DNA of 63,426 nt, counting the filler, from Lenisia limosa (lineage: Eukaryota; Protista; Breviatea), in the NCBI GenBank assembly GCA_001655205.1. It is 13 parts of 13 records of this genome, joined end to end, with 100 filler letters (N's around TTAATTAATTAA, not from the genome) between each part and the next. Parts side by side here need not be neighbours in the genome. Positions count along the whole stretch, not along the records: positions 22,684 to 26,720 come from LPNZ01010378.1; 12 more parts are not named here. The stretch is one strand, 5' to 3'. Positions 22,584 through 26,720 of this stretch are shown piece after piece. Below the pieces are notes generated by a model. It did no database searches and was not told where the DNA came from. It saw only the letters and a list, made by a program, of their open reading frames with translations. Position 1 is the first letter of the stretch. Each line of letters starts with the position of its first letter. The position numbers were made by a program, and so were the translations under genes.

Positions 22584-22922
22584 NNNNNNNNNNNNNNNNN
22601 NNNNNNNNNNNNNNNNNNNNNNNNNNNTTAATTAATTAANNNNNNNNNNNNNNNNNNNNNNNNNNNNNNNNNNNNNNNNNNNNTCGATGTGGCTAAGCCT
22701 GTTTTTTCTGAAACTTTCTATTTTGGTAGTTCAGGTTGATGGCCACTTTTTTTTACAATAATATCTATTTTAGGGTATTAGACCTGATCCTGATGAAGGC
22801 CCCCAGGTACTAGACAAGGTTTGATAAGACGATCAGTCTTTGAAATTGAAAACAAAATAACTTTCTTGAATGTGAATTTATCAGCTACAATTTGTCAATA
22901 TAAATAGCCGTTTATAATCCAG

Positions 22923-23625
22923 GAATTTCAAGAAGAATTCAAAGACGTCATCATAAAGGCTAACGATGTGACACTTGACAAGCTAAAACTCATGGATGAT
23001 TCAGATTTGGTCAGTATTAATTCTCCCATTACTCATACTACTTTCCTTTTGATTTTTAAATCAATATGAATAACTATTATTTATCAACAGCTGCTTTTAG
23101 TTATGAGTCACTTCACTTTGTAGATCCAACTTGCAATGTTAACTTTCAGGGATTTAAATCGAAAAAAGGTCTGCTTAAATTTCTGGTTATAGTCGATTAT
23201 TTTACACAATGAACAATGAACGTGAATATTCTCTCCTTATGAATCATTATCATTTACATATTAACAATTATTGCTGACTCGGACATTTTGATTATTTTTT
23301 ATAGGACACGACTGGACCATTCATTTTGAACACACTTGTCCATACAGCTTTGGAAGGTGTTAATTTGGAAGGTAGCGATATTTTCTCCAATTTACTTTTA
23401 GATGCTATTCCCTGTGACTCTGATGATTTCGATACTGACTATGTCAAAAAGGTTTGAAGCCAACAATTTTTGTTATTGTTCCTTACACAACTCAGTTTGG
23501 ATTAGTTATTAAGTCAAAATACTTTTAGAAATACCTACTCTCACAAATCCATTCAGGGAGATGTTATTAAAATTCGGACCGACGTTGGAGATTTTGTGGT
23601 CTCTACCTACTCACCATTAAACGAG
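22923..23625 (+). CDS. Short multi-exon gene fragment, unknown
   Basis: Exons EFQEEFKDVIIKANDVTLDKLKLMDDSDL; AFSYESLHFVDPTCNVNFQGFKSKK; GHDWTIHFEHTCPYSFG; AIPCDSDDFDTDYVKK; GDVIKIRTDVGDFVVSTYSPLNE, each bounded by AG/GT. Confidence 0.5.
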
Positions 23626-23778
23626 GTATGTATAGATGCATCTGTCTTTTAATAAATATCTGTTTTAGTGAGGTTGTACTTCTACTTGTAAAGTTTTTGT
23701 GCTTGTTGTTACCACAGACTATGAAGTCTTGGGGACTTAACTCGTGGGCTCATCAACTATATATGATATATATAATTA

Positions 23779-23829
23779 TATATGCTGCTGCACCAAAACC
23801 GTGTCATTAATTCAAAAACCGTGTCATTA
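23779..23829. mobile_element. Family F: candidate terminal repeat of a DNA transposon
   Basis: TATATGCTGCTGCACCAAAACCGTGTCATTAATTCAAAAACCGTGTCATTA with an internal direct repeat of about 20 bp. A near-identical copy is at 53717-53773 with unrelated left flanks. It lies about 180 bp downstream of the pogo-associated ORF2. Confidence 0.55.
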
Positions 23830-24006
23830 CTTATTTGTGTGAATTTTGCTTTCGTAGAACCCAACAGTTGGTTTTTTTAAAAAAAGTTCTATTCTCTCAT
23901 TAGACACTCAACAGGACATATAGTAAAAACAATTACTTTGCCTTTTTCATTTTTTTTTTCCATTTTGGTGACTTTTTCTGCTGTTGGGCTGAGTAGACCG
24001 CCTCGA

Positions 24007-24494
24007 TTAACCTTCGTGTTTCTTTGACGATCGGGCTTCAAGTCTTCTTTGGACGCAATTATCTGGAGAAATGTCAAAATCTGTTCAGACCTTACCTGTC
24101 CAGACAATCTTGAAGCAATCTGTAAAACCCTTCACTAAAACAAAGAACCGAACTGGTTTTAACACAAGATCCCGTGCTGGTCCAACGTTACTCACAAACT
24201 TGATGGCAGTTTCAATGATTGAGCGCTGCATATCGTCTTCAATAATTNNNNNNNNNNCGGAAGCTGCTCTAGAACACCATCTCATAACGGCAACTGAGGC
24301 TGCAACTCCTTGTAAGAAGCCTTTGTAAGAGTCATCCAACGTTGATGTCCTTTCATCGTTTAATATTGCACTTTTAACCTGAATAGCAATTGCTTGATCC
24401 AATGAAAGGTCTTCTCCAGCATACAGTACTTGGTTTTCTGTACGAAATTCCACAGCCTGTGACGGAGATGGCTTTTCCATAAAAGTAGTTTCAG
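24007..24494 (-). CDS. ORF2: paralogue of the putative C-terminal domain of the neighbouring pogo-like transposase
   Basis: Exon 24096-24494 (TFMEKPSPSQAVEFRTENQV...QGVAASVAVM...SIIETAIKFVSNVGPARDLVLKPVRFF) aligns by eye with the ORF at 25384-25880. Last exon 24007-24063. Possible upstream exons to about 24830 are interrupted by a gap. Confidence 0.65.
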
Positions 24495-25254
24495 CTGGGA
24501 CAGAGAGATAGAGATTAGGAGACTCAATAGGCGCATTAAGGTTCCTCTGACTATAAAGACCTTTTAAATAGCCATGTGTTACAAGAGGATAACCTTCTTC
24601 TGGAGACGGACGGTACAGTTTTCCTNNNNNNNNNNNNNNNNNNNNNNNNNNNNNNNNNNNNNNNNNNNNNNNNNNNNNNNNNNNNNNNNNNNNNNNNNNN
24701 NNNNNNNNNNNNNNNNNNNNNNNNNNNNNNNNNNNNNNNNNNNNNNNNNNNNNNNNNNNNNNNNNNNTAGTGTGACCTCCTTGGTCCGGTCAAAACGGCA
24801 GAATTGATTGCTTCTTCCGAGGGTTTATAATTCTTTTGTAACCTAAAAACAATGCAGAACTAACTTGAGAATACAATTATCTTAAAGATGACAATGAAAA
24901 TTTTTTTAACAAAAATTGCAAACTTAGATAGATAGAGGGGGTGAAAAGGAAAAAAATCTGGCGAAAAGGGAATGAACTGAACTGTGAACTGACCTTTTCA
25001 CTTCAAAAATTTTTTTTTTCTTAAAAGAGTTTTAATGAGGGCTGTAAGGATATTTTTGGATATAGCGATAAAATTGAGGTGCAGGGGTTGGTTTTCTGAA
25101 TTAATGATACGGTGCTCTTTAAAGATGTACATAACCATTCTGATAATTGTATGTCAAAAAATAGTTCATAGTAAAGGTCAAAAGGAAGTACCGTTCTTGT
25201 TGAAAATGATCATACATGTCAAAGAAAAACACAACTCTCAAAAAAAGACCATAT

Positions 25255-26720
25255 CTACAGATTCTTCCCTTTTGCTCTGACTTTACTCGCCTTTCGTGCT
25301 TTGGCTGTAGCCACTAGCTTGGCTGGGGTCACGGTGTGCGGACCCTGAACCGCACCTCGCTTGGTGNNNNNNNNNNTCATTCTACCTGGCCAGGACGAAG
25401 AATTGCCAGCTGTTCACCAGGCTTTGTGATGAAAAACCGAACAGGCTTTTCCACAATGTCTGGGGAAGGACCAATATCTACAGAACGAATGACAGCGTCC
25501 TTAATGATGGAGAAGTGTGATTCTTCGGCAGCTCGGGCGTGAAGGGGTGTGCTCTCATGTGTTTTGGGGAACCGTAATGCGACAACCGAAAGGGCAGCTG
25601 CGACACCTTGACAGTAGGCCTTTTGTTCAGAAGAAATGTCTTGACAGCGTGGGTCATTTGCTACAAATGCTTTTGCTCTGAGAGCAAGTGCTTGTTCGCA
25701 GGCGAGTTCACAATTACCCTTGGCAACATGCAGTGAAGTACGAAACTCAGCAGACTCAAGTACAGACGGAGTGTCGAGAAAGGTTGGTTGGAATGGGGTG
25801 GGTAGATAGAGATTGGGGGCTTGTGGAGGTTTGTTGAGGAATATAGTGCACGGAGGTATTGGGGGGTGACATTGGGATAATNNNNNNNNNNNNNNNNNNN
25901 NNNNNNNNNNNNNNNNNNNNNNNNNNNNNNNNNNNNNNNNNNNNNNNNNNNNNNNNNNNNNNNNNNNNNNNNNNNNNNNNNNNNNNNNNNNNNNNNNNNN
26001 NNNNNNNNNNNNNNNNNNNGAAACAGACGAAAGCAACACTTTCTGAAACGCCCAGTCAGCCCAACAAACCGTTTTCCATTTACTGCATGCCATCTACCCA
26101 ACTCCTTGCTCTGTCTAATGTTCACTTTTGCATGAAAGTAGCTGTCAGCAACCTATTGCGTCAGATACATCTTTCTATAGACCGTCACTTACTTGCAAAA
26201 AATGGCTTGCAAATGCAGATTCAATGACTATAATGACACTAAACAAAGTAAAGGCAAGTAGGGCGACCTAGAACAGTCATGCTTATAGGATCAAGGTAAC
26301 ATAGTAACCCAAGGTCCACCAGCAACTAACCTCCACAGCGACATGAATCTTGGCTCCATCGCATATACAAACGATGGGATGAGAAGGAGATGAATTATGC
26401 TTTTGGGACAGGAGAGCTAGTGATTCCAAAAAGGATTCTTGCTTGAAGTAGGCAGACTTGTTTACGCCTAATAGCACCATGCCGTTATCCGCTGCAGCTT
26501 TTTTTGCAGCTACAGAAGGGACAAATAGCTCGTCATTACACAGAGGATTTTCAGCGTAGGTCTTCAAAGATTCATCAAGGAGCTTGACCCTAGTCTTTGG
26601 AATTGAAGAAGAAATTGAAAGAGTACTGGTTGGAGGGGCTTGGGTGTTTTGTCAAGGAAATCCAATGATGATTGGCCCATTCACAACCTCACCATCAAGA
26701 TTTGAGATTGAGATTGCTGA
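25255..26720 (-). mobile_element. Intron-containing pogo/Tigger-type (DDE_1) transposase gene, 5' part cut by contig end
   Basis: GVNKSAYFKQESFLESLALLSQKHNSSPSHPIVCICDGAKIHVAVE|VALLAFTLFSVIIVIESAFASHFLQ|VADSYFHAKV matches the pogo pattern (S.WM...F..WL...P.LLILDGH.SH...TSH.LQPLD). GT-AG introns at 26268-26330 and 26153-26192. The join to the downstream ORF (about 25384-25880) is inferred across the N gap at 25882-26019. Confidence 0.72.

Follow-up and report, generated by a model that had tools for sequence, protein, structure and literature searches.

A locus in the breviate Lenisia limosa (assembly GCA_001655205.1) raises the question of whether a pogo-like DNA transposon can carry a second gene. 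The window, that is, the whole stretch of 63,426 nucleotides (nt) that we analysed, includes a part of record LPNZ01010378.1 (positions 22684–26720; 39% GC) that is broken by four gaps of N letters within ~3 kb. Two open stretches on its minus strand, 25880–25380 and 24624–24088, had been read in the initial annotation as two genes of one element, a spliced transposase and a second open reading frame (ORF) that duplicates its C-terminal domain. The two ORFs are paralogous, as had been claimed (BLASTP, 34% identity over 154 amino acids, E = 2e-28). We refer to the units to which they belong as copy A (26720–25255) and copy B (24859–23889). Our analysis indicates that the locus probably holds two defective copies that lie side by side but arose independently, both from a single family of cut-and-paste DNA transposons. 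Members of this family would encode a single transposase of at least ~600 amino acids in at least seven short exons, with a DD36D catalytic region, a C-terminal helical region and a basic tail. Copy A would be most of one such gene, cut by the contig edge and killed by three deletions, whereas copy B would be what is left of a distant relative from another subfamily: its 3' end, with most of exon 4 and with intron 4 and exon 5.

The exon structure of the family can be read from a relative without gaps, L011 (CBDLPA010000080.1; 2302 bp, 44% GC), which was reached via the database fragment P0038 in a scan of a prokaryotic genome collection. The contig was assigned to a marine 'uncultured Colwellia' metagenome-assembled genome (SRR2018010 bin) but is evidently a eukaryotic contaminant of this bacterial bin; a literature search for SRR2018010 returned nothing. 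In L011, one co-linear gene on one strand unites catalytic exons, C-terminal region and basic tail. Two upstream exons (1–160 and 201–298), followed by introns of 40 nt (161–200) and 60 nt (299–358), precede exon 1 (359–922), which contains FDE, GDGAKIH and AE in this order. Intron 1 (923–993, 71 nt) is followed by exon 2 (994–1068, 75 nt), intron 2 (1069–1128, 60 nt) and exon 3 (1129–1211, 83 nt), which begins VADSYYH and ends AGACG/GTGAAT (the slash marks the exon boundary here and below). Exon 4 (1276–1960), behind intron 3 (1212–1275, 64 nt), holds the entire C-terminal region, and exon 5 (2029–2184), behind intron 4 (1961–2028, 68 nt), encodes the basic tail and the stop. The summed exons give a protein of at least ~600 amino acids, the 5' end of L011 being cut. 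Every exon-level comparison between the window and L011 outperformed shuffled sequences (0/1000), for copy A as well as copy B. Given this one-gene structure, the region of the ORF at 25384–25880 constitutes exon 4 of the transposase gene to which the catalytic exons belong. The marine origin of L011 also hints at a marine host for the transposon family.

Copy A follows L011 exon by exon on the minus strand. The contig ends within exon 1, inside the transposase as originally noted, and the remaining 3' part of this exon (26331–26720; 54/107 residues identical to L011 exon 1) carries the second catalytic aspartate in CDGAKIH. Both introns described previously were confirmed: intron 1 (26268–26330, 63 nt, GT..AG) and intron 2 (26153–26192, 40 nt, GTAAGT..AG; 60 nt in L011) are frame-consistent, and the homology of P0035, P0037, P0038 and L011 stops exactly at the ..E/GT junction of intron 1. 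Exon 2 (26193–26267; 75 nt, 25 codons ending ..SHFLQ) is identical to its L011 counterpart at 16/25 residues. Exon 3 (26070–26152, 83 nt) begins VADSY, with the third catalytic aspartate, ends AAACG/GTTTGT and matches L011 at 11/27 residues. Exons 2 and 3 of the window thus agree with those of L011 in length and phase, whereas the introns are of different lengths and have no sequence in common.

The rest of copy A is interrupted by two gaps. The 5' part of intron 3 (26020–26069) runs into a gap of 138 N (25882–26019), which, by comparison with L011 and P0001, spans the last part of intron 3 together with ~57 codons at the start of exon 4; its N count is ~40–50 nt too small relative to L011. 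P0001 extends 35 codons upstream of the visible, 3' part of exon 4 (25386–25881), which encodes the conserved C-terminal region (64/152 residues identical to L011). A joint exon 3 and 4, suggested by frame 1 being open on both sides of the gap, was rejected; L011 has an intron there, and the shared open frame is therefore a coincidence of the N count. Intron 4 starts at 25385–25377 and enters a gap of 10 N (25367–25376) that hides its acceptor. This gap really stands for ~100 nt, taken up by the bulk of intron 4 and by ~16 codons at the start of exon 5. P0001 carries 25 intron 4 codons that are missing from the window at this gap, so the acceptor that had been placed there is not real. Exon 5 continues down to 25255 as a basic tail (10/34 residues identical to L011) with its stop at 25257–25255.

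Judged by comparison with its closest relatives, copy A is inactivated by three small frame-breaking deletions. Relative to P0035, exon 1 has two losses: ~8 nt near 26660, whereby the conserved GDD of PIIIGGDD disappears and an in-frame stop arises, and a single nt near 26620. Relative to P0001, exon 4 lacks 10 nt, with a change of frame at the deletion. The site of this loss coincides with a 10-nt tandem repeat of 1.9 copies (25821–25839, identified by TRF), which suggests a deletion by slippage or a collapse in the assembly. The frame-0 ORF at 25384–25880 is an artefact of the 10-nt deletion, and the true frame differs upstream of ~25830. The proposal that this ORF is spliced to the DDE exons therefore holds for the region, which L011 joins to them in one gene, but not for the ORF as originally drawn.

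Copy B lies on the same strand behind a ~395-nt spacer, and the sequence from the tail of A to the start of B is uninterrupted (24768–25366). It retains the exon 4, intron 4 and exon 5 layout of the transposase 3' end. The exon 4 remnant (24091–24859; minus strand, 63/174 residues identical to L011 exon 4) includes two gaps: 24626–24767, where relatives need only ~25 codons, and 24248–24257, where ~14 nt are expected from P0008 (71% identical to copy B). Homology begins ~7 codons inside exon 4 (~24859), right behind an in-frame stop and without an ATG, and no ATG occurs before residue ~60. The frame is broken near 24283, where ~11 nt present in P0008 and in the family consensus are missing. 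The last exon (23889–24062, minus strand; a basic tail of 57 codons plus stop, 15/42 residues identical to L011 exon 5) opens at 24062 directly behind an AG, and its first codons, IIASKEDLKPDR, align with the start of L011 exon 5, VIANPEELKADR. This match places the end of exon 4 at 24091, with ..GK/GT equivalent to ..GQ/GT in copy A, L011 and many fragments, and leaves an intron 4 of 28 nt (24063–24090; GT..AG, phase 0) whose position matches that of the 68-nt intron of L011. It is either a micro-intron or was shortened after the copy died. The intron and short basic last exon that had been assigned to each ORF are thus borne out as far as both tails are concerned; the acceptor in copy A falls in the 10-N gap, and the junction in copy B is at 24090–24063. 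Copy B thus shows the gene structure of the transposase 3' end, with the truncation falling within exon 4, rather than that of a dedicated second gene.

The relationship between the copies was assessed in a maximum-likelihood tree of 27 sequences. Copy B falls in a clade of 11 rows (starred, 98/98) that excludes copy A and otherwise contains P0008, P0003–P0005, P0007, P0009–P0011, P0016 and P0020, whereas copy A pairs with P0001 (100/99). This placement means that A and B diverged long before they became adjacent, and by their sequences they belong to different subfamilies.

The repeats at this locus also set copy B apart. The motif ACCGTRTCATTAATTCA occurs in three copies versus 0.04 expected. 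Two copies form a tandem pair beyond copy B (23798–23834, starting at 23798 and 23818), which the initial annotation had proposed as a terminal repeat, and the third (25097–25113) lies in an arm between A and B (25090–25113). This arm and the outer copy form an inverted match (25090–25113 and 23798–23821; 24 nt, 92%), which is the sole DNA similarity of the two units; no catalytic-region homology is present between A and B. The proposed repeat is therefore real, but with its partner at 25090–25113 it brackets copy B alone, about 1.3 kb. The most likely origin of copy B is internal deletion, which would have left a non-autonomous element between these 24-nt inverted repeats; they would be the transposon ends, with the arm at 25090–25113 as the candidate 5' terminal repeat. 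The motif was not found in the 118-nt 3' flank of L011.

We then considered the catalytic region. The window, P0035–P0039 and L011 share conserved FDE, (C/G)DGAKIH and VADSY motifs. In agreement with the previous count, 36 residues separate the aspartates of CDG/GDG and VAD in both the window and L011 (9 + 25 + 2 from the exon coordinates), giving DD36D. Pogo transposases span DD29–56D in this interval (PMC7386202), so the third aspartate is spaced as in pogo. From FDEIAF, with the candidate first aspartate, to the second aspartate in (C/G)DGAKIH there are ~141 residues. P0035 is present in the ESM Atlas as an identical sequence, and 9/9 of its structural neighbour clusters are DDE_1 (TM 0.59–0.64); some of the nine also carry DDE_3, and the feature neighbours include DDE-1 clusters. 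From these neighbours and the triad spacing we infer membership of the pogo superfamily. Pfam and PDB searches were run exon by exon, with the exons taken separately. No match to Pfam DDE_1 (PF03184) was obtained at E ≤ 10 for window exons 1–3, P0035–P0039 or the L011 exons, and no other credible Pfam family appeared in any exon or relative. PDB sequence and profile searches of the window pieces and relatives returned no match. The two upstream exons of L011 had no Pfam match, and an N-terminal DNA-binding domain (CENP-B/Tc5/psq-type helix-turn-helix) was not recognised in them. The original assignment to DDE_1/pogo thus stands on spacing and structural neighbours, and fails the hidden Markov model (HMM) test that had been proposed for it. 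An AlphaFold2 (AF2) model of the catalytic piece reached a pLDDT of only 32, leaving one source of fold evidence.

The family is rare in public data. A word search identified P0001, which is 98% identical to copy A, and a two-sequence profile run over 1.84 billion representatives recovered only 34 proteins, all of them unnamed ORF fragments (60–314 amino acids) from ENA metagenome contigs, without Pfam domains. Relatives of exon 1 are P0035 (97%), P0036 (82–90%), P0037 (62%), P0038 (58%) and P0039 (56%). Many family fragments are diverged and often frameshifted (P0010, P0026 and P0028). The ESM Atlas returned nothing for the ORF of copy A, JGI metagenome scans, using P0007 or a degenerate motif pattern as query, produced chance matches only, and a viral contig scan found no relatives. 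The fragments nevertheless bear on intron positions. A conserved 'xFR' ahead of 'DM' in P0015, P0016 and P0030, considered as coding homology, proved to be a translated polypyrimidine/CAG/G splice acceptor; its presence at the same place in all three means that the intron 3 position is conserved across family clades. Exon 3 showed no significant similarity to the N-terminal extensions of the fragments. In the most distant clade (P0018, P0022 and P0028), exon 4 continues into the basic tail without intron 4, indicating that this intron was gained or lost within the family.

The C-terminal region, ~230 amino acids long and mostly helical, is conserved across all family clades. Its AF2 model, built from the 34-sequence alignment, has a pLDDT of 74 (87–97 over residues ~100–180) and shows four helices followed by a beta-hairpin. 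A Foldseek search with this model gave no hit at E ≤ 0.001, only generic helical bundles at E ≥ 0.3, and with the exhaustive aligner VIA the best match was a small helical bundle (Z = 7.7), within noise for helical models. An S..CG[FY]..G[YF][DH]P motif at the N-terminal end of the region presumably recalls the segment behind the catalytic domain of Tigger-type transposases; we take this as a lead rather than a test. Our best guess is that the C-terminal region serves in multimerisation or in contacting a cofactor or DNA. The lysine/arginine-rich last exon is probably a nuclear localisation signal.

How far do other explanations account for the locus? Several points weigh against our reading of two independent relics of a pogo-like family. 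Besides the absent DDE_1 match and the single source of fold evidence, L011 stops 118 nt past its stop codon and is silent on a downstream B-type ORF, and the indels could in part be assembly errors in a gap-ridden scaffold. No TA target-site duplication flanks the 24-nt inverted repeats of copy B, and the ends of the copy-B element rest on this single copy. In a two-gene pogo-like element, the second gene would duplicate the C-terminal domain and act as a regulator or cofactor within the same element as the transposase. Copies A and B do share a strand and lie ~400 nt apart on contiguous sequence; B retains long open stretches, the outermost repeat lies beyond it, and L011 is too short to exclude a downstream ORF. 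We nevertheless regard this architecture, the one proposed initially, as improbable. Copy B is not the nearest relative of A, grouping instead with ten fragments of other contigs to the exclusion of A. It retains intron 4 and exon 5 of a transposase, starts ~7 codons into exon 4 behind a stop and without an early ATG, and is frame-broken, and the inverted partner between the two copies leaves B alone enclosed by the repeats. We likewise give little credence to the adjacency being an assembly artefact, in which case the scaffold would combine pieces of different dispersed repeat copies and the indels would be errors of sequencing or assembly. The exon 5 tail of A, the 395-nt spacer and the start of B sit on one uninterrupted contig (24768–25366), and the pieces of A consistently match relatives at 97–98%. 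An artefact would be favoured by the density of N gaps (four in 3 kb), at least two of them demonstrably wrong in size, and by the deletion in the 10-nt tandem repeat, an easy collapse site; the 8-nt loss of the conserved GDD in PIIIGGDD is, by contrast, atypical for an assembly error.

Domestication of one or both copies as transposase-derived host genes, which had been offered for both ORFs, is very improbable, since it is contradicted by the frame-breaking deletions in both copies and the 5' truncation of B. The multi-intron structure, conserved between distant relatives, resembles that of a host gene and also that of TLEWI, intron-bearing elements whose co-option has been proposed (10.1101/656579), and no target-site duplications were seen at the locus. 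Against this stand the many diverged, often frameshifted fragments in databases and the presence of near but non-identical copies (P0035 at 97%, P0036 at 82–90%). A separate doubt concerns the catalytic region, which might derive from a DDE/RNase-H-like group other than pogo, such as another IS630-Tc1-mariner branch. The lack of a DDE_1 HMM match at E ≤ 10, the ~141 residues between the first and second aspartates and the failure to recognise a DNA-binding domain in the upstream exons of L011 speak for such an origin. We consider it unlikely, as all nine structural neighbour clusters are DDE_1, some also DDE_3, and the third residue is an aspartate at a spacing of 36, as in pogo families.

Comparison with known systems places two decayed copies of one spliced family in context. 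The pogo superfamily of IS630-Tc1-mariner includes Tigger, Fot, Passer and Mover, the last with DD36D (PMC7386202). The family described here resembles them in its triad of three aspartates with a spacing of 36 and in having one transposase gene, which in pogo is sometimes split into two ORFs. It differs in being invisible to Pfam DDE_1 exon by exon, in its at least six short introns at conserved positions, and in the additional ~230-amino-acid helical region and basic tail behind the catalytic domain; furthermore, no TA duplication was seen, and candidate repeats surround copy B only, no ends of copy A having been found. TLEWI are intron-bearing Tc1-like elements of bivalves with DD36E, 322–378 amino acids, 81–89 amino acids between the first and second acidic residues, and the motif YQDNDSKH (bioRxiv 10.1101/656579). 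They belong to the same broad group and share spliceosomal introns at conserved positions, a low copy number and terminal repeats that are hard to find. By contrast, the present family has DD36D, ~141 amino acids in the first interval, GDGAKIH, and at least ~600 amino acids including a large C-terminal extension. CENP-B, which derives from pogo, carries an additional dimerisation domain at its C terminus (PMC7386202). The likeness lies in a pogo-type core followed by an extra C-terminal helical module; there is no sequence or fold match, and the copies here look like decaying transposons rather than a conserved host gene. Like internally deleted non-autonomous transposons, copy B keeps the 3' coding end between short inverted repeats and has its breakpoint within an exon; it differs in that its ends lack a target-site duplication and an autonomous partner of its subfamily was not seen. 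PIF/Harbinger elements are two-gene DNA transposons that encode a transposase and an accessory ORF. Copy B is not a complete second gene with its own start lying within one pair of ends together with the first, as would mark an element of the PIF/Harbinger type.

The remainder of the record part (22684–23768, plus strand) holds an apparent multi-exon gene that converges toward copy B. Its candidate exons lie at ~22775–22806, 22923–23013, 23305–23451 and 23557–23625, with a terminal exon from ~23716, and its introns (100–290 nt) far exceed those of the transposase gene in length. Searches of Pfam and PDB did not identify it.

What appeared to be a new two-gene transposon architecture is thus corrected to two adjacent relics. 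It is a long shot that the family represents a deep pogo branch, invisible to Pfam and marked by a conserved multi-intron gene, a new helical C-terminal domain of ~230 amino acids and a basic tail, in which truncated copies such as B are expressed as trans-dominant regulators of the full transposase. Such expression would start from an internal methionine, yielding the 131-amino-acid ORF at 24480–24085, and, if true, this would be a two-component system that arose by deletion rather than by design. The two relics themselves point to a spliced pogo-like lineage that is missed by standard domain models and hence by repeat annotation. With a C-terminal domain that matches neither Pfam nor PDB, the family is modestly new, and it joins TLEWI as a second case in which transposases of the IS630-Tc1-mariner group show conserved intron positions.

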